Shown here: positions 42,445-64,000 of the stretch, piece after piece
How positions within the stretch are numbered: position 1 is the first letter of the stretch
Layout of the letters: each line of letters begins with the position of its first letter
Source: Caecitellus pseudoparvulus
Taxonomy: Eukaryota; Protista; Bigyra: Bicosoecida
NCBI GenBank assembly: GCA_965644315.1
Contig: CBFFRQ010000044.1
Span: 333,817-397,816 of the forward strand
DNA: 64,000 nucleotides
Direction: 5' to 3'
Notes under the pieces: generated by a model
What the model saw: the letters and a program-made list of their open reading frames with translations, nothing else
What the model was told of the DNA's origin: nothing
The model's database searches: none
Made by a program: the position numbers and the translations under genes

Positions 42445-43835
42445 TCTCTGGCTCTGCACAGTTCTGGTCGGAGCGCTCGACAAGGCAAGCTGAACTTGAG
42501 ATAAAGTCTCGTATTGCACTTTCCGACGGTAAAGCCGCGTAGGTTCAGTCGGATGGAGCGCTTCAGCGGCTGCAAGCGCCGTCCTGCGTGTTGGGTGGTG
42601 CACCGATGGGAGCACCAGCAGCACACCTCGGCGCCCAGCTCTGGCAGCACCGGGCCGCGCCAGGAGCTTCAACAGGCCGCAGTGAGCCACTGGAGTAGCA
42701 GTGAAGGGAAAATGTATGTCCGCACTGTCAGACTGGGCTGCTTTTTCCATCTCGGCAGACATGAGCGCGGACAGGTTCAGCGATGTTCGGGAGACTGTGG
42801 CGTACGCACGCAAACAGGAGACACCCTGGTGCCACAGCCAAAGTCTGTACGTGCACAATACGTGAGCCGTAGCAGGCATGGCGGGCAGCGGGGCCCGCTA
42901 TCACAGCAATGTCACGTAAGTAGACTCCGCGCAATTCGCTTGAAGGCAGCTTGGCGTGCTTCCTCTGTGACTATCTTTCATGGAGGAGGGTTTGATGAGT
43001 TGCATATTGCCAAGGGTCCACTGTACAGGTCTCCAGCAGTGTGTGAAGCGCTGGCTCGCTGCCGGCGGGTGATGGGGCCACGGTCAGTGCGGCATGCCAA
43101 GGTGGGGGAACAAGAAGGACTCACAGCCAGGGAGCCAGAGTACCATCGATCTAAAGCGGCGATGTATTTGTCCCTGCGCTTCAGCGAGTCAGATAGACGT
43201 GTTCTTTGGGTCGTCTCTGCCGCGAGTCAGCGCTGGAGAGCGGATGCCCACGTGTCGCAAGCAGACTGGCTTCGGGAAGCATCCATGCTGGAGTGCCAAC
43301 CACAAGCAAACCAGTGCGGAAACGTGTGTACAAATGCACTGGCCTCTTTCACAGAAGTGCTGCCTGGGGGAGCAGCCTGCACCTCATGATGGCACGGGTG
43401 TGTAGGCCAACGAAGCCAGCGGGTCACGCTCTGCGGAAGGCTGCCCGACGGGCTTTCAAGTGGAGCACAAGGGCAAGCAAGAGGAACAGAAGCACCAGTC
43501 TCGTCGTGTAACTCATCTACAAGGCAAGCGAAGTAGTCCCAAGTGTCGTTGCCTTTGCGCTCCTTGCCAGTGTCAGCTGAAAGAGAAAGTGCTTCGGTGT
43601 CGGACCAGACACCTGCACCGCGGCACTCCCGACGATCCGCAAATTCCAACCAAACCACTCTTTCCTCGCAACGGGCCCTGAACTTCTAGATCTTTTCTCA
43701 GTTCCCAAACTGCGCCCGGTGAACCGCGGGGCTGCTCCTGGTCGTTCACTTCCCATCAGCGCGTGTCAGCTTCGACGAGGCTGGGCTGGTGTAACCTCTT
43801 GCCTTCCAGCGCGCCTGCGCCTCGCACCTTCCAAC

Positions 43836-46800
43836 ATGGGCATCTGCCGCGCGCTCTTCGTACTATGTGCCTCTCTGGCGAGCGTGCACGCCACCCATTG
43901 GCGGTGAGTTTGGCGTGCAGCGCATGCAGTCTGATGCACCCTGAACGACGCCAGCGAGGCCTGCTCGTGCCGCGCTCTGCGGGGCACCTGCGTGGCAGAT
44001 CACCTTGCAGCATCATGCACTGTTCATGTTTAAGCGTGTGGTTGTGCTTTCTGCTGCTACTTGTCCCTGCGAGGCAGGGCTGCGTGGCATGGAGTTTCCT
44101 GCGCCCTGCCTGACGAAGCCCGTCCCTCACCACCCCTTACACCACGATCCCCGCGGCACAGGTTCGGAAAGCTGTCATGGCGACACATCGGCGCCGACAC
44201 AAACGACTTTCTCGTGGAGTTCACCTCCGTCATTGCTTGGTGAGTGTGTGGTGGCGCGGGTAGAGTGTGGGCGTTTCTCCCGCAGCGCACTTTGCATCGC
44301 CACTCCGTCTCAGGCGCCGAACGTTTTTCACTCCCAACCCCAACGTTGGAGATCTATTCGATCATGGTGTACGTCGTGTTCCTGGCCCGCGGGCGTGCGC
44401 TCCAACCCCAAGCGACGTGGTGCACGTGGTGAACAGAATCGACGGGCAACGCAGGTGAAACGCAACCGCTGCGCGCTGAATCTTTTCGCAGGGCTCTTTC
44501 TCAATGGGCGATGGAGTTGGCTCGAACAACTTGCATGACTACACTGTCACAGTGGCAAACAATGTCGATGATTACATCATCGGCACCAAGACGTGGACAT
44601 ACACGTTTCCCAACGCGACCAACAATGGAGCGCCTTTCTACGTGAATTACGCTGCCTGCTGTCGCCTGTCCACGCTGAAAAACGGCAAAGGTGGGTGAGA
44701 CGTGAGCAGTCTGACTCGCATCTGCCTGGCTGACCCTGCTCCCTAATTCTGTGCAGATGGGTCATGGAACTTGTGGGCCAATGTGGACCTGGACACGCGT
44801 GGCAAGTCCTTCATCAACTCTTGCCCTGAGTCTACTCAGGTGCCCATCCAACTCGTTAGCAACGCGCGCGTCGTGACGTGGTTCCTCCCTGTCATTGACC
44901 AGAACAACGACCCGGTGACCTTCCGACTTGCCACGACTGCTGAGAACGGCAACATCCCCCAGTACACTGGTGTGCAAGTGAACAATGAGACGGGCCTCAT
45001 CACGTTCGACGCAACGACAAGTTCTGCAGGGGACCTCCACCCTGTCGTCATTGTCATCAGTGATGGCAGCTGCCAGTCTGTGATCGACTTCCTCGTGAAG
45101 GTTGTGGAGCCTGATAAGTACTGCATCGGTTGCAGTAGTGGCCACAACTGCCGCCAGTGTGGGCAAGACGTGGATTGCCTCGTGGGAGGCGCATCAGGGT
45201 GTGACACACCAGGCGCCCTTTGCCTGGAAAATGCCGCCCCCAACATCACCTCGGCCTTTGAGGGGTCCCCAGTGGCAAACTGCGTCTTCTCCAACCAGCC
45301 CCTGACTTTCGATGTCACTGCCGTGGACGGCATCGATGTCTGCGACAACATTGAGCTCATCTCATCAGACCTGCCCACTGGCGCGACCCTCACCCACAGC
45401 AACGCGCCAACGGCCAACCCGCTCACCATGACCTTCGATTGGACGCCGACAGGCGGACAGGTTGGCAGTTACTCCATGACGTTCTTCGCTCGGGACAACG
45501 CCAACGCGCTCTCCCGCAACATCGTCGTGGACCTCTTTGTGCCTGGCCCGACTTCCGTTCTGGCCCCGCCCATTTCGTCTGTATCCCCCTTGTCCTTCTG
45601 GAGTGATGCCACTGGTACGGATCTGGACGTGACCATTCTTGGGTCAGACTTTGAACAGTCATCAGACTTGAATTGCGCGATGCTGCTCGAAGGCGAGCCT
45701 GAAGCGAGCAAGGTGTTTGACCGGGCAGACTACATCACCTCCTCCGAGATCCGGTGCCGCATGGCCGAATACGATGACTTGGACCTGGACAGCAGCAGCC
45801 CGTTTGTGCCCTTTGCCAACTTCTCAGTCTCCAACGCGGCATCCTGCGGCGTCTTCACGTACTATGAAGACGACTTGGTCGTGTACTACCCACGAGACGT
45901 CTTCTCCAGCGTGCAGGTCATCTCGGAGAGCACAGCTGTCACCTTCAGACCTGACACGCTTACGTACTCAGTCACGCTGACTCGCCGGACAGACCCTGCC
46001 TTGGATGTGGGCGTCAGGGACGTGGCCTTTGTGGACGCTACGCTTGCTGCTGGCGCGTACACCGTGGAAAGCGTCGCTGTGAACGGTAACACGGGGGCTG
46101 GAGCTACAGCTCGTGCCACTGCTGTCGGCTCAGGTGTTCCTGGAGCCGTGTTCACGCTTGAGACGGTGCCAACACAGGTGACCACAATTGAAGTTGTACT
46201 GCAAGTGACTGGTTCAGCTGATGGCCAGGGGCAGAACATTCCGCTACCTGTGCTTTCTGCTACACACGGCTACGACATCCGAGAGCCGATGGGCGCCACG
46301 GACCCGGGCTTCGTAAACCCGCTTGCCATCCCAGCAGTGGTTGACTCCGCGTCGGCGCCCACGATGTGGGCTCAAGTAAACGACGCGAACATGCAGCCGC
46401 TGTCTGTCGTGGGGGACGCTTCAGGTGCCTCTCCCTCTGTTCTCACCCCCGCTGAGGTGATCACAGTGACTCTGCAGGTGGAGCTGCCCTTCACGGGACG
46501 CTTGCACGGCGCCCAGCTTGACGTCCAGCTGTCCTCCACCTCCCATGCAGTTAGCCCGCAAGATGTTATGCAGCTGCACTCCCTTGTGAGCTTGTCGGAG
46601 CCAACTGGGGATGTCACTGCAACAAAACCACCACACTTCTCTGGCGTGAGCCTGTCCGCCGCAAATGTGGCTGGCGCAACCACCGCAACGACTACTTCCC
46701 TCTCTGTCGACCTTGGCGTGCTGGAGAATGCTGCAGATGCTCAAAGGACGATCGACATTGTCTTCGAGTGTGTTGTGCCGACCACGGCGCCTTCCAGCTC

Positions 46801-49800
46801 AGATGTCAGCCTCAACGCGCAGCTGTCGTTTCAGCGCCCGTCCACTGGCGACCTCGCGCCTGATACACCCCCTCTCGGGCCCTTCCAGCTGGTGACATCA
46901 GCGAGTGCTGCCTTCACCATCGGAACTCCCGATGTCACCATGGTTCTTGTGGGCACCCCGTCGGGCCCGATAGATGCAGGCGACCACTGGACGCAACAGT
47001 TCACCCTGAACGCTGCAGGCGGCCCAGGCAGAGCCAACGCTTACGCCTTGCTGCTGCAAGATGCGAACCTTGCAAGCGACAACTACCGTGTACATTCCGT
47101 TTCTGTGAATGGAACGGCAGTTTTCACTGCGAACACTGCGGGGGATCCGCAGGACGGCCTCGCCAGTGTTGGGCGTGGACCAGGAGGCGGCGGCAACCAG
47201 CAGCTTTTAGCAAACGTTGCTATGCTTCAAGCTGGAACAGCTACTATTATTGAGGTTGAGTTTCTCGCTTACATTTCTATCGAGGCAAGTTCCCACGTCG
47301 AAGCAGAGTACTCAATCTCGTACGATTCTCACCCAGGACCGTCTGTGGCTGGTCAGCCCGCAGCAACTTACGCATCGACACCCCAAACGACAACAATCTT
47401 GACAGCGACCCCAACCGCATCTGCGACAGAAGGGGGCCTGGACGCTGTGACGGCGGCGTCCAGTGGCAGTGCCGTGCCGCGGCAGGTGTTCCCTGGCAGC
47501 GCCGTGGACGTGTCGGTGAGTGTGGGCGTGCCTGAGGGCACCGTGAGCGGCGCGTCAGTGACTGTGGACTTGTCGGGGTGGACCAGCGGCACGTCGCCGG
47601 TGGTGATTGCTGGCGTGTCGGGTGTGTCTGGCAGTGCAGGTGTGGTGAGTGACGTGTCAGGGGGGCTGGGCGGTGTGGCGGCGGGCGCCGTCGTGTCTGG
47701 CGATGGCACGAGTGTGACTGTGCCGCTGGGCACGCTTGTGAACAACGACACTGACAACAGCGTGGGTGAGACTGTGGACCTGACGGTGTCGCTGTCGGTG
47801 CGTGACGTGGCGGGGCTGGTGCCAGGTGACGTCGTGACGGCTGTGGCGACGCTGAGCAGTGTGGGTCTGCTGAGCGCTGGCAGCACGAGTGGGGGGTCGG
47901 CCGTGTCGTCGGCTGGGTACGGGCTGGTGGTGGGTGCGCCTGACCTGGAGCTGAGCGCGGGGCCTGTGTGGGTGCCAGTGGACGGGACGTCTGTGGACGC
48001 CGGGGATGTGATCAGTGTGAGCTGGAGCGTGGGGCACACGGGTGCCAGCAGTGCGCCGGGCTTCAACATCAGTGCAGACCTGTCGGGTGTGCTGGGCAGC
48101 GGTCTGCTGCCGGTGGTGGATGTGCTGGTGGGCGGGTCCAGCCTGGGTGCGGGTGTGGTGTCGACGCTGAACGCGGACGGCGTGGCGGTGCTGGTGTCTG
48201 AGCTGCCGGTGGGCAGCACGGCGGACCTGTCCGTGGTGCTGGGCGTGCCGTTGAGCATGGAGGGCGGCGCAGCGCTGCCGGCCCTGCAGCTGTCTGTGCC
48301 GTACACGACGACGTCACGCAGCGACGCGGGTGCGGGGTCTGACGTGCTGGTGAGCGGGTCCATCAGCCTGCCTGCGGGGTCGCCGTCTGTGTCGGTGTCT
48401 GAGGGCGGCCTGGACGCTGTGACGGCGGCGTCCAGTGGCAGTGCCGTGCCGCGGCAGGTGTTCCCTGGCAGCGCCGTGGACGTGTCGGTGAGTGTGGGCG
48501 TGCCTGAGGGCACCGTGAGCGGCGCGTCAGTGACTGTGGACTTGTCGGGGTGGACCAGCGGCACGTCGCCGGTGGTGATTGCCGGCGTGTCGGGTGTGTC
48601 TGGCAGTGGTGGTGTGGTGAGTGACGTGTCAGGGGGGCTGGGCGGTGTGGCGGCGGGCGCCGTCGTGTCTGGCGATGGCACGAGTGTGACTGTGCCGCTG
48701 GGCACGCTCGTGAACAACGACACTGACAACAGCGTGGGTGAGACTGTGGACCTGACGGTGTCGCTGTCGGTGCGTGACGTGGCGGGGCTGGTGCCAGGTG
48801 ACGTCGTGACGGCTGTGGCGACGCTGAGCAGTGTGGGTCTGCTGAGCGCTGGCAGCACGAGTGGGGGGTCGGCCGTGTCGTCGGCTGGGTACGGGCTGGT
48901 GGTGGGTGCGCCTGACCTGGAGCTGAGCGCGGGGCCTGTGTGGGTGCCAGTGGACGGGACGTCTGTGGACGCCGGGGATGTGATCAGTGTGAGCTGGAGC
49001 GTGGGGCACACGGGTGCCAGCAGTGCGCCGGGCTTCAACATCAGTGCAGACCTGTCGGGTGTGCTGGGCAGCGGTCTGTTGCCGGTGGTGGATGTGCTGG
49101 TGGGCGGGTCCAGCCTGGGTGCGGGCGTGGTGTCTGCGTTGAACGCGGACGGCGTGGCGGTGCTGGTGTCTGAGCTGCCGGTGGGCAGCACGGCGGACCT
49201 GTCCGTGGTGCTGGGCGTGCCGTTGAGCATGGAGGGCGGCGCAGCGCTGCCGGCCCTGCAGCTGTCCGTGCCGTACACGACGACGTCACGCAGCGACGCG
49301 GGTGCGGGGTCTGACGTGCTGGTGAGCGGGTCCATCAGCCTGCCTGCGGGGTCGCCGTCTGTGTCGGTGTCTGAGGGCGGCCTGGACGCTGTGACGGCGG
49401 CGTCCAGTGGCAGTGCCGTGCCGCGGCAGGTGTTCCCTGGCAGCGCCGTGGACGTGTCGGTGAGTGTGGGCGTGCCTGAGGGCACCGTGAGCGGCGCGTC
49501 AGTGACTGTGGACTTGTCGGGGTGGACCAGCGGCACGTCGCCGGTGGTGATTGCCGGCGTGTCGGGTGTGTCTGGCAGTGGCGGTGTGGCCAGCGACGTG
49601 TCGGGGGGCCTGGGCGGTGTGGCGGCGGGCGCCGTCGTGTCTGGCGATGGCACGAGTGTGACTGTGCCGCTGGGCACGCTTGTGAACAACGACACTGACA
49701 ACAGCGTGGGTGAGACTGTGGACCTGACGGTGTCGCTGTCGGTGCGTGACGTGGCGGGGCTGGTGCCAGGTGACGTCGTGACGGCTGTGGCGACGCTGAG

Positions 49801-52800
49801 CAGTGTGGGTCTGCTGAGCGCTGGCAGCACGAGTGGGGGGTCGGCCGTGTCGTCGGCTGGGTACGGGCTGGTGGTGGGTGCGCCTGACCTGGAGCTGAGC
49901 GCGGGGCCTGTGTGGGTGCCAGTGGACGGGACGTCTGTGGACGCCGGGGATGTGATCAGTGTGAGCTGGAGCGTGGGGCACACGGGTGCCAGCAGTGCGC
50001 CGGGCTTCAACATCAGTGCAGACCTGTCGGGTGTGCTGGGCAGCGGTCTGTTGCCGGTGGTGGATGTGCTGGTGGGCGGGTCCAGCCTGGGTGCGGGTGT
50101 GGTGTCGACGCTGAACGCGGACGGCGTGGCGGTGCTGGTGTCTGAGCTGCCGTTGGGCAGCACGGCGGACCTGTCCGTGGTGCTGGGCGTGCCGTTGAGC
50201 ATGGAGGGCGGCGCAGCGCTGCCGGCCCTGCAGCTGTCTGTGCCGTACACGACGACGTCACGCAGCGACGCGGGTGCGGGGTCTGACGTGCTGGTGAGCG
50301 GGTCCATCAGCCTGCCTGCGGGGTCGCCGTCTGTGTCGGTGTCTGAGGGCGGCCTGGACGCTGTGACGGCGGCGTCCAGTGGCAGTGCCGTGCCGCGGCA
50401 GGTGTTCCCTGGCAGCGCCGTGGACGTGTCGGTGAGTGTGGGCGTGCCTGAGGGCACCGTGAGCGGCGCGTCAGTGACTGTGGACTTGTCGGGGTGGACC
50501 AGCGGCACGTCGCCGGTGGTGATTGCTGGCGTGTCGGGTGTGTCTGGCAGTGGCGGTGTGGTCAGTGACGTGTCGGGGGGGCTGGGCGGTGTGGCGGCGG
50601 GCGCCGTCGTGTCTGGCGATGGCACGAGTGTGACTGTACCGCTGGGCACGCTTGTGAACAACGACACTGACAACAGCGTGGGGGAGACTGTGAACCTGAC
50701 GGTGTCGCTGTCGGTGCGTGACGTGGCGGGGCTGGTGCCAGGTGACGTCGTGACGGCTGTGGCGACGCTGAGCAGTGTGGGTCTGCTGAGCGCTGGCAGC
50801 ACGAGTGGGGGGTCGGCCGTGTCGTCGGCTGGGTACGGGCTGGTGGTGGGTGCGCCTGACCTGGAGCTGAGCGCGGGGCCTGTGTGGGTGCCAGTGGACG
50901 GGACGTCTGTGGACGCCGGGGATGTGATCAGTGTGAGCTGGAGCGTGGGGCACACGGGTGCCAGCAGTGCGCCGGGCTTCAACATCAGTGCAGACCTGTC
51001 GGGTGTGCTGGGCAGCGGTCTGTTGCCGGTGGTGGATGTGCTGGTGGGCGGGTCCAGCCTGGGTGCGGGTGTGGTGTCGACGCTGAACGCGGACGGCGTG
51101 GCGGTGCTGGTGTCTGAGCTGCCGGTGGGCAGCACGGCGGACCTGTCCGTGGTGCTGGGCGTGCCGTTGAGCATGGAGGGCGGCGCAGCGCTGCCGGCCC
51201 TGCAGCTGTCTGTGCCGTACACGACGACGTCACGCAGCGACGCGGGTGCGGGGTCTGACGTGCTGGTGAGCGGGTCCATCAGCCTGCCTGCGGGGTCGCC
51301 GTCTGTGTCGGTGTCTGAGGGCGGCCTGGACGCTGTGACGGCGGCGTCCAGTGGCAGTGCCGTGCCGCGGCAGGTGTTCCCTGGCAGCGCCGTGGACGTG
51401 TCGGTGAGTGTGGGCGTGCCTGAGGGCACCGTGAGCGGCGCGTCAGTGACTGTGGACTTGTCGGGGTGGACCAGCGGCACGTCGCCGGTGGTGATTGCCG
51501 GCGTGTCGGGTGTGTCTGGCAGTGGCGGTGTGGCCAGCGACGTGTCGGGGGGCCTGGGCGGTGTGGCGGCGGGCGCCGTCGTGTCTGGCGATGGCACGAG
51601 TGTGACTGTGCCGCTGGGCACGCTCGTGAACAACGACACTGACAACAGCGTGGGTGAGACTGTGGACCTGACGGTGTCGCTGACGGTGCGTGACGTGGCG
51701 GGGCTGGTGCCAGGTGACGTCGTGACGGCTGTGGCGACGCTGAGCAGTGTGGGTCTGCTGAGCGCTGGCAGCACGAGTGGGGGGTCGGCCGTGTCGTCGG
51801 CTGGGTACGGGCTGGTGGTGGGTGCGCCTGACCTGGAGCTGAGCGCGGGGCCTGTGTGGGTGCCAGTGGACGGGACGTCTGTGGACGCCGGGGATGTGAT
51901 CAGTGTGAGCTGGAGCGTGGGGCACACGGGTGCCAGCAGTGCGCCGGGCTTCAACATCAGTGCAGACCTGTCGGGTGTGCTGGGCAGCGGTCTGTTGCCG
52001 GTGGTGGATGTGCTGGTGGGCGGGTCCAGCCTGGGTGCGGGTGTGGTGTCGACGCTGAACGCGGACGGCGTGGCGGTGCTGGTGTCTGAGCTGCCGTTGG
52101 GCAGCACGGCGGACCTGTCCGTGGTGCTGGGCGTGCCGTTGAGCATGGAGGGCGGCGCAGCGCTGCCGGCCCTGCAGCTGTCCGTGCCGTACACGACGAC
52201 GTCACGCAGCGACGCCGGTGCGGGGTCTGATGTGCTGGTGAGCGGGTCCATCAGCCTGCCTGCGGGGTCGCCGTCTGTGTCGGTGTCTGAGGGCGGCCTG
52301 GACGCTGTGACGGCGGCGTCCAGTGGCAGTGCCGTGCCGCGGCAGGTGTTCCCTGGCAGCGCCGTGGACGTGTCGGTGAGTGTGGGCGTGCCTGAGGGCA
52401 CCGTGAGCGGCGCGTCAGTGACTGTGGACTTGTCGGGGTGGACCAGCGGCACGTCGCCGGTGGTGATTGCTGGCGTGTCGGGTGTGTCTGGCAGTGCAGG
52501 TGTGGTGAGTGACGTGTCAGGGGGGCTGGGCGGTGTGGCGGCGGGCGCCGTCGTGTCTGGCGATGGCACGAGTGTGACTGTGCCGCTGGGCACGCTTGTG
52601 AACAACGACACTGACAACAGCGTGGGTGAGACTGTGGACCTGACGGTGTCGCTGTCGGTGCGTGACGTGGCGGGGCTGGTGCCAGGTGACGTCGTGACGG
52701 CTGTGGCGACGCTGAGCAGTGTGGGTCTGCTGAGCGCTGGCAGCACGAGTGGGGGGTCGGCCGTGTCGTCGGCTGGGTACGGGCTGGTGGTGGGTGCGCC

Positions 52801-55800
52801 TGACCTGGAGCTGAGCGCGGGGCCTGTGTGGGTGCCAGTGGACGGGACGTCTGTGGACGCCGGGGATGTGATCAGTGTGAGCTGGAGCGTGGGGCACACG
52901 GGTGCCAGCAGTGCGCCGGGCTTCAACATCAGTGCAGACCTGTCGGGTGTGCTGGGCAGCGGTCTGTTGCCGGTGGTGGATGTGCTGGTGGGCGGGTCCA
53001 GCCTGGGTGCGGGTGTGGTGTCTGCGTTGAACGCGGACGGCGTGGCGGTGCTGGTGTCTGAGCTGCCGGTGGGCAGCACGGCGGACCTGTCCGTGGTGCT
53101 GGGCGTGCCGTTGAGCATGGAGGGCGGCGCAGCGCTGCCGGCCCTGCAGCTGTCTGTGCCGTACACGACGACGTCACGCAGCGACGCCGGTGCGGGGTCT
53201 GATGTGCTGGTGAGCGGGTCCATCAGCCTGCCTGCGGGGTCGCCGTCTGTGTCGGTGTCTGAGGGCGGCCTGGACGCTGTGACGGCGGCGTCCAGTGGCA
53301 GTGCCGTGCCGCGGCAGGTGTTCCCTGGCAGCGCCGTGGACGTGTCGGTGAGTGTGGGCGTGCCTGAGGGCACCGTGAGCGGCGCGTCAGTGACTGTGGA
53401 CTTGTCGGGGTGGACCAGCGGCACGTCGCCGGTGGTGATTGCTGGCGTGTCGGGTGTGTCTGGCAGTGGTGGTGTGGTGAGTGACGTGTCAGGGGGGCTG
53501 GGCGGTGTGGCGGCGGGCGCCGTCGTGTCTGGCGATGGCACGAGTGTGACTGTGCCGCTGGGCACACTTGTGAACAACGACACTGACAACAGCGTGGGTG
53601 AGACTGTGGACCTGACGGTGTCGCTGTCGGTGCGTGACGTGGCGGGGCTGGTGCCAGGTGACGTCGTGACGGCTGTGGCGACGCTGAGCAGTGTGGGTCT
53701 GCTGAGCGCTGGCAGCACGAGTGGGGGGTCGGCCGTGTCGTCGGCTGGGTACGGGCTGGTGGTGGGAGCGCCTGACTTGGAGCTGAGCGCGGGGCCTGTG
53801 TGGTCACCCTCACCTGCTTTGCCTGTGGACGCCGGGGATGTGATCAGTGTGAGCTGGAGCGTGGGGCACACGGGTGCCAGCAGTGCGCCGGGCTTCAACA
53901 TCAGTGCAGACCTGTCGGGTGTGCTGGGCAGCGGTCTGTTGCCGGTGGTGGATGTGCTGGTGGGCGGGTCCAGCCTGGGTGCGGGTGTGGTGTCTGCGTT
54001 GAACGCGGACGGCGTGGCGGTGCTGGTGTCTGAGCTGCCGGTGGGCAGTACGTTCGATTGTGAAGTTTTCATGCAAGTTTCCACAGATGCTGAGAGTAGC
54101 AGCTCTTTGCCCGTTGCGGAGCTGACTGTCCATGCTGCTTCAACCTCAAGAGCATCATCAAGCGCTCGTTCTTTCTCTTTGACCTCCGCTGGTGTTCAGT
54201 ATTCAATCGAACCTCCAGAGCTGAATGTGGCTGTACAAAGTGATCCAGTCACAGCTGGTTTCGGCCAAGTTGTAGTTGGGTCAGAGGTGATCGTTACGGT
54301 TGCGCAGGTCATTTCGGAAGGTACCATGTCAAATGCGAACCTGACTGTTTCATGGGCAGATTCTGGGGCCTTTGTTTTTGTGGAAGGCTCTGTATCTATC
54401 ACTACCCCTGCATCTGTCACGACATCTCGCTTTGCCGGGGACTGGAACGCAGTCGCTGCTTCTGCATCTCATGCAGCCGGGGAGACAGGCATCAACTTTG
54501 ATTTGGGTACGCTTATCAATTCTGACGTAAACAACTCGGCAACTGAGCTTCTTGTGCTTACAGCCTCGCTCCGACCCTCCAATGTTTCGGCTGCCCACGT
54601 TGCTGGAGCTGTCTCTGACCTTGTGGTTGAGTCGCGATCCCTTGGCGTTTGCGATGGATGCTTGACAGCTACAGCAAATGTGTCTATGCTTGCGCCTGTT
54701 CTGCACTTCGGCAGCTTCTCCCCAGCCCTGCTTACTGATGTAGTTGCTGGGGAATCGTACAACGTCTCGTTTACCATCGCAAACTCGGGCCCGTACCCGT
54801 CTCATGCGTATGGAGTTGTGCTTTTCGACGAAGGACTCGTGTCTGGTCAGTACGACATCTCGAAAGTGTTCGCGGGGAACGCACTTGTCCTGGATCGTTC
54901 AGCTGAGGTTGACTTTGTTCCCGGAGGCTCAACGGTGCTGAGCATGGGTGGTGCCAACCTTGCGCAAGCATCCAGTTCAAGCGTTTTGCCGCTCATTGCC
55001 CGCTCCTCGAGCACCCAAGTTACCTTGACCCTGCAAGTGAACCCTCTTGCCCGTACAGAGGATGGGCTTGCAATGCGAATTGGAGCGCGGGCAAGCAGCT
55101 ACCCTGAGCTGGCCCTGGCTGAGAACTACACCTACGTTGCAAGCTCGGGTGTCGGTGGTGTGTTCAAGCTTGAAGACATCAACCCTGTGGTCACTTTGGA
55201 CATTTCGGGCAGTGATGCGGCGGCTAGCATCGGCTCTCAAGTGTCCTTCACAGTTCCTTTACAGTTCCCGCTGGGCCGCCTCTCGGCTGCCAACGTGAGC
55301 GTGTTGCTCGGAAATGTGTTCAACTCATCCGATGTGGCGCTGCAGCCAGGAGATGTGCTGGGCGACTTGACTCTCGCTGCTGTCTCTGGCGGTGCAGGCG
55401 TCACTTTCAACAACGGGCAGGTGGCTTCGCTGAACGGTGTGCATGCTGCCCTGGAGGCTGACGCGCAGGCCGGTTCGTTTGTCTTCACTTTCTTCAACAT
55501 CACCAATGACCCGGGCAACGGCGGCAGTGCCAGCGGCGATCCGATCTTGCTCACGTTTACTGGGCTCGTTGAGGACCACCCTGCTCTCGTTGATGGAGTG
55601 CGCATTGAGGGTGGCGTAACCTTTGATGTGCCTTTTGCAAGCTTGAACGCGACGCTGCCCACGCTGACGATCCTTGAGCCTGCCATCGACGAGAACTTGG
55701 TGTTGACGGCCACAGGTAGCACTCTTGACAACTCCTCCTTGGTTGTGCTTGGGCTCGGTGCAGGCGACCACGTTCAGTTTGGCCTTCAAGTGGGGCACCT

Positions 55801-58800
55801 GCCTTCCAGCTCCTGGCAGGCGTTCGGGGTGACACTGAAAGATGCCTGGCTGGGATCATCTCTTCCCGTGGCAGCAACGCCCAGCTCAGTGCCCGCAGCC
55901 TCGCGGATGTTCTACCAAGTCACAGCGGCTGCATGGGCTGGACATGGGGTGAGCACTTCACATGCTGAAGCCGACATCGTTGTCCAAGGCTTGAATCTGC
56001 CCCTGAACAGTTCTTCGACAGCACTTGACTTCAGCATCGTCATCGCGCCTGCCTCTGAAGCGGCAGCCAGTGCATGGCCGGCACAGACCCTGCAGCTGGA
56101 GTACTTCTCGCACCCAAACACTACGCGGGCCAGGCGATACACGGCGATCATTGACCCTGCAGCCTCTGTGCAGGAGTTGCGCATGGCTGCCCCTGTTGCG
56201 CAGGTCAGTGCAGAGGGCTCAGCGCATGCTGGCAACGGAGACGGTGCTCCAACGGTCGCGCCAGGAACGTCTGCTGCTTGGACTTTGAGTCTGCAGCTTC
56301 CTCTTGCAACAATTGAAGGTGCTGAGCTCTCCCTCGACCTTGTCGGGGCAGACAGTCTCTTCGATACGTTGGAGGCGGCTGCGCTCACATTTGTGCCTGC
56401 AGCTGTGCCAAGTGCAGCCCCGCCTTCATCTGTGGCAGGCTTGGCTCCCCCGTCTGTGGACGTGGTCCAAGTCAACTTGCCGACTTCAGCAGCAGCTGGT
56501 GTCGATGGCTTTGTTGGTTCCACAGCAGATGTCGTGAGCTTCGTCACAAGTGGCGGGGTTCCGCCCACAGCCTCTGAGCTCCATTTGAACAGCACTCATG
56601 CTTTACTGAGTCCTGCTGCGTGGCGCATCGGCAACGAGCTGGCAGGGCTGTACTCCCCTGTCCCTGCTGCTGCGCCGGCCACGGGCGGGTCAGGAGCGCC
56701 GGTGACGCTCAATCTCACAATCACAGCCACTCCTACAACCGCAAGTCAAGTCGCTCGTGGCGTGAGCAGCAGTGGGAGTGTGCGATTCTCTGGTTCTAGT
56801 GGCACTTTCCCGGCATTTGAGATGAGCTTGCCTCCGTTGACTGTTGTGGAGCCGACAGTGCAAGCCCCGTCATTCTCACCTTTGGCAGTCGCAGATGTAG
56901 ATGCAGGCGATGAAGTGACTTTCTCCACCACCATCGAGCACTCTCCCGTCAGCGACTCCATTGCCCACACCATTGAGCTGTTCGATAGGAGTTTAGTGCA
57001 TGGAAAGGTGGACTACATCACGCTCTCTGGGGCATCTGTGACCTCGGAAGTCATCCACGCACGAGCCTACGACCTGCGCAGGGTTGTGGTCGGAGGCGAG
57101 GTGCAGTACGACGCAGCTCTTGGGGTAGACCCGTACGGCTTGGCGGCATCCTCAGTCAACTCTGGCCTGTGGGGCATCATTCACAACATGACTCTGGGGC
57201 AGACTGTTCCGGTCTCCATGACTGTGCGGCTTTGGGAAGGTGTTGCAGCGGCGACAGCTGTTCGTCCCCAGTTCAACGTGACTTGGTACTCCAGCCCCGT
57301 GAAATCCGCAGCGCGTGCCTACTGGGTTCCTGCAGCTGCAGATCCAGTGATCGGCGTGCAGGCTCCAGCTGTTGCCGTCCAGCGCAGCACAGATGACTCG
57401 ACTGTGCTGGATGCGGAGGCTGCTGTGGGTGCTCGTTTGACTTGGGACATTGAAGTGGCACTGCCTGAAGGTGTCTCCACTGGCGTGGTCGTTGCCTTCA
57501 ACTTGTCTTCCCTGCTTCCTCCTGGGGTCAGTGCAGCTGCGACCAACGGGCCTCTCTTGGCTGATGTCCAGGTCGTGTCTGTTCAGGCAAGTCCAGGCGG
57601 CATCGGGCTTATCGAAGTGAACGCTACAGGCTGTGCAGGTGTGGCACTTGCAGACCAGGGGGTCATGTCTGGGCCGACTTTCCCTGCTCTTGCGGCAGCT
57701 GCAACAGTATCCGCTGCTGAGCAGTTGGCGGGCCACGAGATCATGGTCCGTATCCCCATGTGCTCTGTGCAGAACAAGGACGACGTCAACTCCATCAGCC
57801 AAGCCATGCAGATTCGCCTGCAAGGCCACGTTGATGGCCGTATTCTGCCCTTGACTACGTCTTTGAATGGCGCCACCATCGCCGGCGCTGTTCGGGTGCT
57901 GAGTGATGCGGTTCCAGAACCGAGTGCTCCAGTCAATGTCAGCGCCGGTGTGATCGCGGGAGCAAACGTCATACCCAGTGCGGCTAATTTGACTTCTGCA
58001 ACTCCAAGCACCAGAGTCGTGGAGCCAAGGCTGGAGATCGTAAGCGTGAACAACACCGAAAGCGCTGGGGTGGCGGGCGACGTCATCGACACAACCATTC
58101 GGGTGACCCACGAAGCCTCCTCGGAAGGCACTGCCTTCCACACCCGTCTCCTCGACACAAACCTGCAGTCCGGGGCCATTTCAGACAGGCTGTACCAGCC
58201 ACTGTCCCTGGTCTCGATGGGCAACGAACTTCTGTCCCCTGTTGCGGCGCTGGCATCAGCGTCGGCTTTCTCCACTGGGAATGGCGAGCTGCTCCCTGTA
58301 GGCATGTCGCTGTCCACGAGCGGCGCCCCTGAACTCACCACGACTGACGGACAAGGCGACCTCGTGTACACGTGGAAGCTACTGGAAGGTGTTGTGCCGC
58401 AGCTGACTGTGGCTCCTGAGCTGTCTGTGCGCTTCAGCACACACAAGGACCCCGCCAACATCTATGCCCGAGAGCTTGGCCCTGTGGGACTGACCCCAGC
58501 ACAGGACGCTGCCACGCATGTGCAGCAGGGCACTGTGCTGAAGGTGCTCACGGTAGGAATTGCAGTGGACCCACAGGACGCTGGTGCGAGTTCGGGGGCG
58601 GTGATCGTGGGTTCTCCTGCTTCCGTGCCTGTCGTGCATGGTCAAGGTTTGCAGTCCACAGTGACCCTCAGTGTGCCGCTTGGCACGTTGCCTAACGTGA
58701 CGGCAGCTATCCCGCTGCACCCTACTCCGGGGGCAGTTGGCAACCCCTCTCTTTCGTCGGCATCCGCGACAGTCGTTGACCCCGTTTCAGGCAGCGTGAC

Positions 58801-61800
58801 AGACGTAACTTCGCTCGTGCAGCTGCGAGACTGCCCTCCTGGTGTGCTTGAGAATGATGCCGCTTTTGGCACGCTGGCTGATCTGTCGCCTCACGCCGTG
58901 TCCATGTTGGGCAGCACTGCTGGCATTAGCCTGTGCACGCTCGTCCAAATTCCGCCACAAGATGTCACTGGCCGCTCCATAGGACCGCTGGCAGGGCACT
59001 CAAGCCTGAACTTGACATTCGTCGTGGACGCGACGGTGAGCGGCTCTGGGCCCGGGGCCCTACCTCCCCTGGCTGCAGTGGGCGCAAGTGCCGTCACCAC
59101 TGCCTTTACAGAAGCGGCAGCGGGTAGCATTGCACCTTCAGGGTCCTCCATTGTCTTTGTGCCTGACTCATCAACGGCCGCGTCTTCGCTGCCTCTGGTG
59201 GTCGCGCAGCCTTCAGCGGGACAGCCGGTGCTGACCAGTGACTCGAGTTTCTCAGGGGATGCTGGCGATGAGGTGACGTTCTCCCTGCTCGTCACGCATG
59301 ACCCAGCTGCATCCACTGCAGCAACGGCTTTCTCTATGATGCTGCAAGACTCAAGCCTAGCCTCCGGCGCATACGAGCTGGTGGCAGCAAGCGTGGACGG
59401 TGTGGATACTCTCGGGGCCACCAAGGCAGCAGCATCCGACGCTGTCATGTTTGTAGCATCACTTCCACCAGGTCAGACATCCAACGTCACCTGGACTGTG
59501 CGCATGACGGGAGCTGTGAACGCCAGTGGGACATACGCACCCGACCTGGAGCTGCAGTGGCGATCCCACCCCACTTCCCCCAACGCCAAGCTGTTCTCCA
59601 GTGCTTCGCTCATCGGAGCTGGTGAGTGGACTTCCACGCTGGCAGGGGCGGCCAACCTCTCCCTCGCGGTGCCTGGCGTGTCCTTCACCTCCTTCGAGGC
59701 AACTCCGTCCGGACTGGTTCCGACTGATCCTGGTGCAACTGCAGCCGCCGCTGTCGGGGAGGAGGTTGAGTTCTCACTGTCTGCACTGCTACCCGAAGGT
59801 AACGTGCCAGGTGGGCTGGTCAACATTACAGCCGGCACACCAGGGGCTCTGCTCTTTGAGGAAGGTGTCGCCATCGACGCGACGCCTCGACCTGGACTCC
59901 AGCTGGTCCCTCAGTGCGCCTCGGCTACACCGTACAGCAGCTTCATCGAGGAAGTGGTGCGGGACCCCAGTGGCGCGTGGATCGCCTTCCGCACTTGCCA
60001 CATCGCGAACTTGGATCGAGACAACGACGCGGAAGATTCACTGACGTTCTCCCTCTCAGGGTTCACCACCCCCGCTGCTCTGAATGCGACGGGTGGCAGC
60101 CCGCTGGCCGTTGGCACCTTCACCTCCCGAGGCAACACTGTGGTGCAACCATCTGAACCTGTGACTGTCCTCCCTGTCCTGGCGCTGACCCTGAACTACG
60201 ACATTGAGAGTATTGTGGTTTCGTCCGAGCAGCCATACACTTTCAACCTGACCGCAACAGCAGCTGATGTGTCCCTTGCCGCAGCGGCTCGGGATGTGTC
60301 CTTGGCGGTTGTCACGCTCAGCGCCCAGACCAGGAGCACAAGCCCAGCAACTGCAGACCCTCAGTTCGTACAACAGGCAACCGGTGATGCAGTGTTCCAA
60401 GAACACACTGGTGTGAGCCTGCAGGCCGCAACTGCTTTGCTGGGTGGCAGCAAGCAGGCAGCTGCAGCACTCCGCAACCTTCTCCCCTCCCTCACAACTG
60501 GGGCACGGCGAGCAACCCCAGCGACCTTCAACGTGCTCACTGTGACAGTGCCCGCCATGCACAGTGGCGAGAGCCTTGACAGCATCTTCAACATGCAAGT
60601 GCTGGCCCACACACCGCCCGGGACGCGCATTCCCCACCTGGCTGCTCTGTCCTGGTCGGGCGTCCCTGCGCAAGACGCGTCGTCGTTGGCGGCCCCCACG
60701 TTTCTGCTGCAGTCTGCAGTCGTGACCAAGACAGTCACTTGCGATGCATGGTACTCCTGTGGCGGCAATGGCGTCTGTCTGCCCAGCAACAAGACAGCTG
60801 GCGACGTTTTGCCCGAGCAGGCCATTCCACTGGAGGGCAGCGCAGTCGATGCTGGGCGGGTGTACTCTACCGATGCACAGTGCGTGTGCAAGGCTGGGTG
60901 GACTGGCACATCGTGCTGCTTTTGCGACCCTACTGCAGATGCGGCCGACATTTGCCACGGACACGGGACCTGTGCTGGCTACGGCGCTTCTGTATGGGGA
61001 AGGCCAGCCGGAGGTCAGTGCCAGTGTGACGAGGGCTTTGGGGAGCAGGACCAGGATCCCTTCTGCCGGGGAGTGGCCTGCAGCGATGAGCCTGGGGTGT
61101 GTGAAAACGGGAGGTGCACCATGGATTGCTTGGTTAGCCCTTGGTCCAACTTCACCGCAGATCGCACTGCGTCTGGCTTCCTGGCCGGCAACATGACGCG
61201 CACGCGGGAGATTCTGCTGCCATCCGCTTACGGTGGGCAAGCGTGCCCAAACACGCTCATTGAGAGTGTTCCATGCACTCTGGCAGAGTGCGAGAGCAGG
61301 CCTGCCGCCGCTGCGCCGAGCGAGGCCTGCGATGCTGCCGACACTGGCTTCCGCATCTCGGCGTCCCTGCCCCTGGACACCTCGTCACAGCAGCTGACTG
61401 CGACGCTGAGCATTTTCTTTGTCATGGTCATTGCTGGCGCGGTGTTAATGGCTTGGATGTGGTCTGTGAGCTGGTTTGAGCGCTTCGCCGTGCTTCGGTG
61501 GGTCGTGCCAGCCCTCAGCGCTGTGCGTGACCGGGCGGCGACGATGCTGAAGGTTTACGGCGGAGGCGCCATGCACGAGCACGCACAGTCCATGCTGCAA
61601 CGCACAGAGGGCCCCAGCAAGACAGCGCCAGCACTTGACAGCGACTCGGACAGCGAGGGCGAACAGACATCTGCTGTCGCACCAGCAGGCATGGCAGTGT
61701 CAGCACAACGCGGCGAGGCTGCCCTAGCTACTCCTCCCACAAAACCTGCTGAAGACGGAAACGTGGCCAAGCTCCCTGCCTCGGCCGTGCTGGGGGCAAA

Positions 61801-64000
61801 ACGCACAGCGAGCTATCTGTCGCCCCAACTGTGGGTGAACTGGCGCAACGTCCTGCTGGTCGTGCTGCTGGCCACAGATGGCGTCATGAGCGTGGCGCCG
61901 CTCTTCATGGAGCAAGTGCCATGGCTTCCCTACATCCCGCTCAAGGCAGTGGCACGCCTGTTCTCGCTGTCTGCTGTCAAGTACCTGCCGCTGTACTCCT
62001 TCTTCTACGTTCTCATTGCCTGCGCACTGACTGCGCTTCTGGTCTTGCTGCCCCTGCTTCAGTTCTGGCGAGCTCAAGCAGTGCAGCAGCTGAAACGCAA
62101 GCCAGTGGAAGGCATGGTTGTGGCAGTGCCTGATTCCTCGCGCACTCCGACCAAGCCTTCGCAGATTGTCCCACTGGCATCGCCTTCGCCAGTGCAGCAT
62201 GTTGGGGCAGGACCGCTGTCACCTTGGGCAAAGGCGTCTGGCGTGCGCGGAGCTGAGTCCACCACCGGATCCCCCCCTGGTGGTGATTCTGCTTCAAGTG
62301 ACTTGGGCGCTCTGGTGGACATTCCCAAGTCCCGCGGGCGGCGCACGCTGGCACCTCTGAAAGCAGGCGGCAGGCACGCAACCCACACAAGCCCAGCAAC
62401 TGGGCTGGAAAAGCCTGCACAAGTCACAGCTCTTGTGCCAGCCGGCGGGGAAACAGTGGAGAAGCCACGCGCCCTTTCTGCGCCAGGCAAGGACACAGAG
62501 CCTGAGACAAAGCAACGAAACGTCTCCTTCAACAAGCACGGCGACCCGAAGTTGACCGCACAGCAAGAGCACCACGTGGCGTACCACACGTCCTGGTACA
62601 GTGGTGTGCTGCCCGTCATGCTGTACTGCTTTGCCACCATTCTGCTCGTGCCAACGTATGTGATCCTGTTGCAGCCGTTCACGTGTGGCTTCCCGTTCGG
62701 CGGGTACAGCCGTGACGAAGCCGGCAACTGCCTCCCAGACCCGTGCTGGAGCAACCTGCACATCCTTCTTGCAGTGTTTTCGGCGCTGCTGCTTGCTGCT
62801 CTGGGGCACAGCCTGTTCGTGTGGGCGCCCAAGCGCATGCACGATGATCGCACCCTGGAGCAAGACGTGGACATGCAGGGTGTTCTGGGGTACATTCTGG
62901 CGCGACGTGTGCATGCACTCACCAAGGGCGCGACTGCACCTGGAGAGGCCACCGGCACAGGCGACGATGACACACAGGCAGAGTTCAACCCACGGAAGCT
63001 GGTGCACGAGCGCCTGGTTGCGTCCCTGCGCCGATGGGTGCAAACCTTCGAAGCTCACCCGATGCTGCCCTTCTTCCTGGCACTCGTGGTGGTCAAGTTC
63101 ATCGTGGCATGGGCTGGAATTGTGTTGGGGCGCAGCAACACCCCTGCTGCCCTGGTGCTGGGCGCGCTGGCACTGACCGGACTTGCAGTCTGGAGTTGGC
63201 TGAAGCCTGCCGACACCTTTGTGTTGAAACGCCTGCAGGCGGTCGTACCGCTGGTGTACGGCACGGCCGCGGCCACGGCTTGGCTGCTGCTGCTTTCATG
63301 GGGCACGGCTCCGAAGGTGCCTGTCACCTACGCGACAACTGGTGTGCAGGACTTGCAGGTGAACGCCGAGCAGGCTGATGTGGATGCGAGCAACTTCGCG
63401 CTGTCTGACAACGCGGATGAATACGCGGCCGGTGCGCCAGGAGTGATTGTAGCGGCTGTGCTGTGGCTGCTCATCGCCGTTGGAGCCACTGCAGTGGCAA
63501 TTTTGCAAGACCGCCAACGCTTCGCAGGTGTTCCGCTGTTCAGGAACTGGGAGGAGGGAGTTGGCTCCAGTGTCAAGCGCTCTGGCACGTACAGCGCCCT
63601 GACCAAGGTGTTCCCGCCAGAGCAGACCACGGGGCAGCTGGTTGCCCGTCTGCAAGCCATGATGGGGACCAACCTGGATGACTTGACCGACACCAGCGAC
63701 GACGATGAGGAAGGCGAGCTGTCCAAGGTGCTGGCCGAGTCCCGCCGTGGCAGCTTGCTGGTGGGGCTGGGTGCTCGCCCGGCAGTGGATGCGTTTGATT
63801 TCACTGGTGGTGCGTCAGATGACTCCGCCACTGACACGTCTGACGGCGAAGCAGAAGGAGCAGTGCTACCCATGCCCCCCCCTGGTGGTGACGCAGTTGA
63901 GCGGCTGGTGGGGGAAGCAACTGCCCAGCAGGAGGAGGCAGAGCCCGACCAGGCTGGCGAAGCACCTGCACCGGTGTGGACAGAGGTGTCCTTTGACGAG
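43836..64000 (+). CDS. Giant (>6548 aa, 3' incomplete) Sib-like adhesin/receptor: signal peptide, Sib-like N-domain, Ig/TIG-like and fimbrial-like repeats, EGF-like, TSP1, multi-pass TM; join(43836..43903,44162..44239,44314..44368,44492..44690,44757..>64000)
   Basis: Four GT-AG introns give MGICRALFVLCASLASVHATHWRFGKLSW...AWRRTFF...MGDG...YAACCRLSTLKN. The last exon reads in frame +2 wherever I translated it (start, array, end), and the ORF track lists no + ORF in that frame after 44757, consistent with no stop before the window end. Confidence 0.88.
47429..54048 (+). repeat. Coding tandem repeat: ~6.8 near-identical copies of a 972-bp (324-aa) unit
   Basis: Unit starts at 47429, 48401, 49373, 50345, 51317, 52289, 53261 (GGCCTGGACGCTGTGACGG recurs every 972 nt); shadow ORFs in the track also recur at 972-nt spacing. 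Confidence 0.97.
60740..61291 (+). other. EGF-like Cys-rich modules followed by a thrombospondin type 1 (spondin-like) repeat within the giant protein
   Basis: CGGNGVC...CVCKAGWTGTSC; ICHGHGTC...CQCDEGF; DCLVSPWS...MTRTREILLPSAYGGQACP...ESVPC. Confidence 0.8.
61394..63505 (+). other. Multi-pass transmembrane region (~9-10 hydrophobic helices) of the giant protein
   Basis: Hydrophobic segments LSIFFVMVIAGAVLMAWMW, VLLVVLLAT, FFYVLIACALTALLVLLPLL, VMLYCFATILLVPTYVILLQPFTC, CWSNLHILLAVFSALLLAAL, FFLALVVVKFIVAWAGIVL, ALVLGALALTGLAVWSWL, VVPLVYGTAAATAWLLLLSW, VIVAAVLWLLIAVGATAVAIL. Confidence 0.8.

Follow-up and report, generated by a model that had tools for sequence, protein, structure and literature searches.

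The window analysed here is a 64,000-nucleotide (nt) stretch of the Caecitellus pseudoparvulus genome (contig CBFFRQ010000044.1, assembly GCA_965644315.1), and its right-hand end holds a gene for a giant surface protein. The genome comprises 30.6 Mb in 215 contigs, with ~64% GC and short GT-AG introns. Frame +2 is free of stop codons from 44747 to 64000 (6418 codons, + strand), as the original prediction had expected, and the longest opening in the other + frames between 42 and 64 kb is at most 197 codons. Local base composition gives, by arithmetic, an estimated stop density of ~0.027 per codon, which excludes a chance opening of this length. Base 64000 is also the end of the contig (C44), and since the gene runs off the window end it is absent from the list of open reading frames (ORFs). 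The prediction had described just such a gene, with a spliced start, no stop in the window and only an antisense ORF listed in its place.

We read five exons from the sequence of 43780-44800, with GT..AG at all intron borders and all on the + strand. Exon 1 (43836..43903) carries the ATG, a signal peptide and then THW with two bases of a split R codon, followed by a GTGAGT donor at 43904. Exon 2 (44162..44239; FGKLSW...), with AG/GT borders, and exon 3 (44314..44368; RRTFF...) each encode part of an SIBA-E_N domain; exon 2 aligns with the N-terminus of dictyostelid Sib SIBA-E_N, and the 3' end of exon 3 is set by an RNA joint. Exon 4 (44492..44690) encodes the core of that domain, MGDG ... CCRLSTLKN, and has RNA joints on both sides. 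Exon 5 (44757..64000) is a giant terminal exon that stays open to the contig end. The spliced reading THWR/FGKLSW...IAW/RRTFF agrees with the contiguous Sib sequence (THFRFG..SW), and the exon layout is common to all paralogues, in each of which [TS]H[WY]R comes directly after a signal peptide.

Transcription was followed by comparing 43600-47400 with the contigs of four runs, three of them marine metatranscriptomes and one of DNA. Intron 3 is spliced in run X10 (joint 44368>44492, GT..AG) and intron 4 in runs X10 and X15 (joint 44690>44757); neither joint was seen in the DNA run. The RNA contigs begin ~150-176 nt upstream of the ATG, and most of 44755-47400 is covered by RNA contigs without additional joints. 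The locus holds a single genuine gene of five exons that is expressed and encodes a giant surface protein. With the 5' exons it has 6548 codons inside the window, and a paralogue on contig C54 runs 82 codons further to a stop, so that the full protein should have ~6,600 residues, in keeping with the more than 6500 first proposed. The same 43600-47400 segment is present in marine metagenomes and metatranscriptomes of several studies (runs X10, X15, X18), and the many synonymous-looking differences suggest that close strains of the organism occur widely at sea. Automatic annotation can miss or split a gene of this kind, 20 kb long and with micro-exons, a near-identical internal array and a contig break.

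The listed antisense ORF (47368..54084, minus strand, 2238 codons) covers only the GC-rich repeat array of the gene. This 2238-residue frame is a shadow and not a gene, a by-product of the array's G-rich, stop-poor codon composition; the diverged homologous units, their confident fold and purifying selection all make the + frame the coding one. The selection was measured against the C54 copy, which is 96-98% identical over the body of the giant exon and has nine array units versus seven in the window gene. Across exons 2-4 and their introns (window 44157-44800) the two copies are only 69-79% identical, and their upstream neighbours are unrelated, so C54 is a paralogue with a homogenised body and not simply the same locus. 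The jump in identity from 69-79% to 96-98% suggests gene conversion of the body only. Nei-Gojobori ratios of nonsynonymous to synonymous substitution (dN/dS) between the two copies are 0.10 for the head and first units, 0.18 for the stalk behind the array, 0.13 for the EGF/TSP1 region and 0.27 for the membrane region, so purifying selection acts all along frame +2. Cytoplasmic loop 3 contains a 162-nt patch (62362-62523) that does not align with C54, although it has equal length and its surroundings are 94-97% identical. A pair of frameshifts was considered for this patch and rejected on the ground that it is an equal-length, non-aligning stretch; the C54 version resembles other paralogues, so it is the window copy that carries a replaced patch.

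The distal end of the protein is a Sib-type head. We searched it with single exons, or with paralogues in which exons 4 and 5 are naturally fused. Exon 4 alone matches SIBA-E_N (PF24907, 'Integrin beta-like protein A-E, N-terminal') with 30.9 bits (cut-off 28.1, E 3e-7) over profile positions 43-105, and a six-frame search of the genome placed the domain above its cut-off at seven loci, including window 44474-44695 (33.3 bits). Behind it lies a second Ig-like (cadherin-like) domain (44834..45103), colinear with the second Ig domain of Sib (PF24908) and below the Pfam threshold in the window copy. In the fused-exon paralogues both SIBA-E_N and the second Sib Ig domain are above cut-off, PF24908 reaching 39.1 bits in L008 and 36.3 bits in L006 at the aligned position. 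A cysteine-rich knot follows (45104..45241; eight Cys at ORF residues 126-179), at the place where Sib proteins are also Cys-rich. A He_PIG/Big_9-like Ig domain and an IPT/TIG-like domain (45284..45769) complete the head on sub-threshold Pfam matches (He_PIG 23.0 bits, Big_9 22.7 bits, TIG 18.4 bits). In P0001, the best relative in the databases, the order of Ig_SIBA-E_2nd, He_PIG and TIG is identical, with TIG above cut-off.

A profile of the head (alignment A2, with exon-wise rows) was run against 1.84 billion representative proteins and gave 2652 matches, 843 of them below 1e-10. These include dictyostelid proteins of 1908-1926 residues that carry the full Sib domain set and are named 'substrate adhesion molecule' or 'type A von Willebrand factor domain-containing protein'. 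Other matches are unnamed proteins from metagenomes and sequencing runs with SprB, HYR, He_PIG and Por_Secre_tail domains, a set typical of the surface proteins that Bacteroidota export by type IX secretion. When Sib, bacterial and window sequences are aligned, they stay colinear over the stretch that begins with the first mature residue and includes the Cys-rich segment. Both parts of the original prediction for this region were borne out: the motif chain THWR.FGKLSW, AWRRTFF, MGDG, CCRLSTLKN, NSCP, PI, DFLV aligns column for column with dictyostelid Sib, and the head recurs in bacterial surface proteins, namely secreted ones with SprB, HYR and Por_Secre_tail.

Between the head and the membrane stands a long stalk of paired domains, mapped by jackhmmer with a 324-residue array unit. 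It starts with half a unit of B type and a first diverged A/B unit (45830..47392; ORF residues 362-505 and 553-882), continues with a tandem array of seven 972-nt (324-residue) A/B units that are 95-100% identical (47420..54220; residues 892-3158) and ends with six diverged A/B units (54203..60628; residues 3153-5294). The stalk thus holds one half unit and 14 full two-domain units; the paired domains foreseen for it are there, and their number exceeds the ~13 pairs originally counted. A repeat search gave the same 972-nt spacing in seven copies; Tandem Repeats Finder, whose longest period is 500, did not find the array. The paralogues on C54, C95, C89, C164, C78 and C53 have the same unit organisation. 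The array has a GC content of 0.70 and a GC skew of +0.29, and 62-64% of the residues in its units are Gly, Ser, Val or Ala. Lys is absent from each of the seven array units and numbers 0-3 in the other units; the whole 5549-residue ectodomain has only 20 Lys, along with 52 N-glycosylation sequons.

The fold of the stalk was approached through the unit at 54203-55156, modelled with AlphaFold from an alignment of 41 diverged units from seven genes (A3); a model of one array unit made without an alignment had a predicted local distance difference test score (pLDDT) of 37.6 and was not used. The unit is predicted to form two beta-sandwich domains (pLDDT 88.8, predicted template modelling score 0.82). 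A VIA-align search of 48,161 PDB representatives returned as top matches the Gram-positive pilins EbpB, LrpA, RrgB, EbpC, BcpA, CppA and SpaD (Z 12-13, root-mean-square deviation 2.7-3.0 over ~135 residues of domain A), and aligned 245-254 residues with PrgB and antigen I/II, whose adhesin stalks have two domains; Foldseek matches of the model also included antigen I/II and integrin alpha leg domains. In the ESM Atlas the best ten rows were all prokaryotic DUF11-bearing clusters, several named 'isopeptide-forming fimbrial protein' or 'conserved repeat domain', and the best four had TM scores of 0.67-0.75 over 267-288 of 318 residues. At the sequence level the stalk profile found no match among PDB sequences, and none of the 41 units matched DUF11 (PF01345) at E up to 0.1, with weak hints of CARDB, Big_12 and N_BRCA1_IG only. 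As modelled, then, the stalk units have the fold of prokaryotic pilin/DUF11 domain pairs. A Lys-Asn/Asp isopeptide bond is the defining feature of bacterial isopeptide-forming fimbrial domains. The array units are free of Lys, which excludes such a bond there, and A3 contains no conserved Lys column. The fimbrial character that had been proposed for the units accordingly stands for their fold and fails for the lysine chemistry.

A rod of this composition could also serve as a structural coat or spacer, in a glycocalyx or mucin-like layer that keeps things away or builds a structure at the surface instead of binding a ligand, with the membrane domain as a mere anchor. Its repetitive sequence rich in Gly, Ser, Val and Ala, the many sequons with almost no Lys, the change in repeat number between the closest copies (7 versus 9), the homogenisation of arrays within each gene and the large gene family would all suit a coat. 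Against this, the protein bears a specialised and conserved distal head, which is under the strongest constraint (dN/dS 0.10), its units are predicted to be folded beta-sandwiches and not disordered mucin, and its base keeps invariant charged and Cys residues at 30-35% identity, beyond what an anchor needs. We consider a coat or spacer unlikely.

The stalk is joined to the membrane by EGF-like cysteine-rich repeats (60734..61126) and a degenerate TSP1 domain (61127..61291). In an alignment of the membrane-proximal part and base of seven paralogues (A4), the cysteines of three EGF-like stretches are invariant. TSP1_spondin lies below its cut-off in the window copy, while TSP1 is above cut-off in the same columns of paralogues C53 (55.1 bits) and C197 (66.4 bits), and solved repeats of thrombospondin-1 and of F-spondin match a profile of the region (E 8e-6 to 2e-4).

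The membrane domain itself (61394..63505) has nine predicted helices, with hydropathy peaks of 1.8-2.7, and long cytoplasmic loops. Helices 1-3 are at 61394-61462, 61850-61906 and 61991-62059, helices 4-6 at 62606-62671, 62756-62824 and 63062-63130, and helices 7-9 at 63146-63202, 63239-63301 and 63440-63505. An acidic cytoplasmic tail (63506..64000; 32 Asp+Glu in 164 residues) is cut by the contig end. With the N-terminus outside, the loop flanks have 18 Lys and Arg inside versus 8 outside, the long loops of variable sequence are placed inside together with the acidic tail, and the only Cys of the inter-helix loops lie in one predicted outside loop, in an invariant CGFPFGG..C..CW..H motif. 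Hydropathy thus predicts a base with its N-terminus outside and its C-terminus inside. The prediction of an EGF/TSP1 segment above a membrane domain of about nine or ten helices with a cytoplasmic tail holds on these data, with EGF and TSP1 scores of the window copy below the Pfam cut-offs.

The base contains the motifs QLWxNWRN, CGFPFGG..C..CW..H and LFR, all conserved in paralogues, and its predicted helices hold polar or charged residues (D in helix 2, K in helix 6), with an RS motif after helix 6. The domain has no Pfam match at E up to 10, no solved-structure relative in a profile search and no match among proteins of 600-1900 residues in a sequence search. Among proteins of 3500-11000 residues the only match is P0168, which is 96% identical to the C89 paralogue of this genome. 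A base profile search found one 530-residue metagenome fragment (P0169) with 31% identity over helices 4-9, and an ESM Atlas feature search gave weak leads of 0.77 or lower. This nine-helix membrane domain is conserved within the gene family and is uncatalogued.

Could this base be the working part of the protein, a channel, transporter or transducer that pulling on the tether would gate, as in polycystin-1 or the adhesion G-protein-coupled receptors (GPCRs), with adhesion secondary? It is conserved across paralogues with different N-terminal parts (C53, C197, C184), its helices carry the polar and charged residues and the RS motif just described, its extracellular loop has three invariant Cys, and partners could dock on the acidic tail and on the long, variable loops of the cytoplasmic side. 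On the other side, it has no detectable similarity to channel, GPCR, PKD/REJ, GAIN/GPS or TM9 families, and the ESM Atlas leads were only weak. On balance a primary role of this kind strikes us as quite improbable. The polar residues, the invariant disulphide-capable loop and the conservation across differing N-terminal parts nevertheless hint that the base is more than an anchor. A bolder version, in which the base is a new class of transducer (a tether-gated channel or signalling module) that turns pull on a rod of more than 100 nm into a response, and the ectodomain was assembled from bacterial-origin modules independently of Amoebozoa, is speculative and on present evidence rather unlikely.

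At least five paralogues in the genome have the same overall design. The start of exon 5 (318 residues, with the end of the head and the following Ig-like domains) matches eight genome loci in open frames of 2483-7246 codons, and the base is found in at least eight genes. Three more genes, C53, C197 and C184, have the EGF/TSP1 region and the nine-helix base with canonical TSP1 domains. C53 starts with stalk units and is not among the matches of the exon 5 search, and a search for stalk units in the regions fetched for C197 and C184 found none. Since all three share the base, it is the most widely shared module of the family. The open frame on C164 (L021, L022) leaves the array after 2483 codons into an apparently shifted, Arg/Gly-rich frame, and C78 (L019) begins in mid-stalk at the first base of its contig; the assembly may have split a single gene into these two pieces at its repeat array.

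Relatives extend beyond this genome. JGI (Joint Genome Institute) metagenome contig Ga0307982_1000314 (L028), with a GC content of 0.57 and no DNA match to the present genome, encodes three stalk units, EGF-like and TSP1 parts, the nine-helix domain and a tail rich in Ser and Asp, so at least one further organism has the stalk-plus-base design. With P0168 and P0169, this contig makes up all the relatives of the base that the databases returned. Another class of giant proteins, of 4,400-4,700 residues, shares the Sib head (contigs C32, C65 and C29, L006, L007 and L008; database proteins P0003, P0059 and P0105). There the head leads into Cys-rich and cadherin repeats and numerous IPT/TIG domains, and the multi-pass membrane domain is of another kind. 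One member of that cluster is deposited as 'Celsr2, partial [Symbiodinium sp. KB8]' and is probably a contaminant of the algal culture.

Taken as a whole, the protein is probably a long-reach adhesin or receptor. Removal of the signal peptide would leave a mature N-terminus that opens the Sib-type head, with SIBA-E_N, the second Ig-like domain, the cysteine knot, the He_PIG-like Ig domain and the IPT/TIG-like domain in that order. This distal head would bind a surface, be it substrate, prey or partner cell. The rod, with its half unit and 14 two-domain units (~29 domains), would set the reach; at the usual ~4 nm per Ig-like domain, it should hold the tip more than an estimated 100 nm from the membrane. 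EGF-like repeats and the degenerate TSP1 domain would connect the rod to the nine-helix base. As anchor of the tether, the base might also relay load or binding into the cell.

Several points weigh against this reading. Neither intron 1 nor intron 2 was seen spliced in RNA contigs over 43600-47400, so both splices rest on homology, and one RNA contig of run X18 reads unspliced through intron 2. Over the remaining 16.6 kb we infer transcript continuity from the open frame and from selection, and the 3' end of the gene lies beyond the assembly. Within the window copy, PF24908 scores 17.5 bits (E 0.005) under a cut-off of 27.8, the TIG assignment is below the Pfam cut-off, the EGF region has only weak Teneurin-type EGF and EGF_2 matches that all fall below cut-off, and TSP1_spondin reaches 33.1 bits versus a cut-off of 41. 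The count of nine helices comes from hydropathy and not from a dedicated predictor or model. Finally, the role first proposed (adhesion, prey capture or mechanosensing) is inferred from the functions of related domains in other proteins.

The architecture as such is new, built from partly known parts (Sib head, pilin-like fold, TSP1) and one uncatalogued membrane domain. With it, an unrelated-looking marine protist is seen to mount the Sib head on another chassis, and to do so in two or more giant architectures. This, and the frequency of the head in bacterial secreted proteins, makes it appear that a common adhesin tip was put to use by eukaryotes on several occasions. The stalk indicates that the prokaryotic pilin/DUF11 fold can form a stalk in a eukaryote without the lysine cross-link, and the nine-helix base is a candidate link between attachment and the behaviour of a bacterivorous flagellate. 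We found no named family or paper with a Sib-headed polytopic protein in databases or literature, and the original description of the architecture as undescribed therefore stands.

Among known systems the closest at the N-terminus are the Sib proteins of Dictyostelium (SibA-E, 'similar to integrin beta'; Pfam PF24907, PF24908, PF24909 and PF24619), of which SibA and SibC are documented adhesion receptors (PMC9197732) and which reviews treat as specific to Amoebozoa (PMC9453864). Both have a signal peptide directly before SIBA-E_N ([TS]H[WFY]R.G..SW ... CCR ... N.SP), then a second Ig-like domain (sub-threshold for PF24908 in the window copy) and a Cys-rich segment, and both are surface proteins with a long ectodomain of bacterial-type modules. 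If the gene were a Sib orthologue, as the above-threshold SIBA-E_N and the colinear second Ig domain and Cys knot might imply, its vWA domain would bind the ligand and an NPxY tail would recruit talin to couple the receptor to actin. A vWA domain, a single-pass anchor and NPxY are the features that define Sib proteins and link them to talin (PMC9197732, PMC12686525). Pfam scans of 44747-49801 and 53699-63999 had no match to vWA_SIBA-E (PF24909) or Ig_SibA, the remaining gap consisting of near-identical array units only. In the seven paralogues compared, the complete C54 tail among them, the final 1300 residues contain no NP.[YF]. Six-frame searches of the genome gave no match to vWA_SIBA-E or to Talin_middle, searches that had no positive control and so do not establish absence. 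The window protein is 3.4 times longer than Sib and has nine membrane helices in place of a single glycine-rich helix of GxxxG type, and it is without the membrane-proximal Ig domain of SibA. The contrast drawn at the outset, between this protein and Sib proteins with a vWA domain and one membrane span, is thus upheld. The missing defining features refute membership of the Sib family; orthology in the full sense is exceedingly improbable, and only the N-terminal module is shared.

The Bacteroidota-type secreted proteins likewise carry SIBA-E_N and the second Ig domain ~100 residues from the N-terminus, followed by Ig-like domains. They differ in their length (250-2,200 residues) and C-terminal type IX secretion sorting domain, and they are without membrane helices, EGF or TSP1. 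The stalk is comparable to DUF11 proteins, to pilins (RrgB, BcpA, EbpB, LrpA, SpaD) and to antigen I/II and PrgB, in that a two-domain beta-sandwich fold is predicted to be strung into a tandem rod. For DUF11 clusters this comparison draws on TM scores of 0.70-0.75 over 273-288 residues. It differs from the DUF11 and pilin domains in the missing sequence-level match and conserved Lys, and in being a eukaryotic rod made of one polypeptide on membrane helices and not of sortase-linked subunits.

Two further systems resemble the window protein at the membrane. The Dictyostelium substrate adhesion receptor SadA (~950 residues) is alike in layout only, both proteins having extracellular EGF-like repeats, nine predicted helices and a tail in the cytoplasm, and it differs in being without a giant ectodomain. 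Its three EGF-like repeats and nine putative membrane helices were described by Fey et al. 2002, as reported in PMC9197732 and PMC9453864. Base searches spanning proteins of 600-1900 residues found no named relative, the SadA sequence itself not having been compared. Scans of the window protein had no Pfam signature of PKD, REJ, GAIN/GPS, PLAT or 7TM. Polycystin-1 and the adhesion GPCRs also set a giant modular ectodomain on a polytopic base, with 7 or 11 helices versus the nine predicted here, and by analogy only they share with the window protein the plan of a long adhesive ectodomain carried by a multi-pass base.

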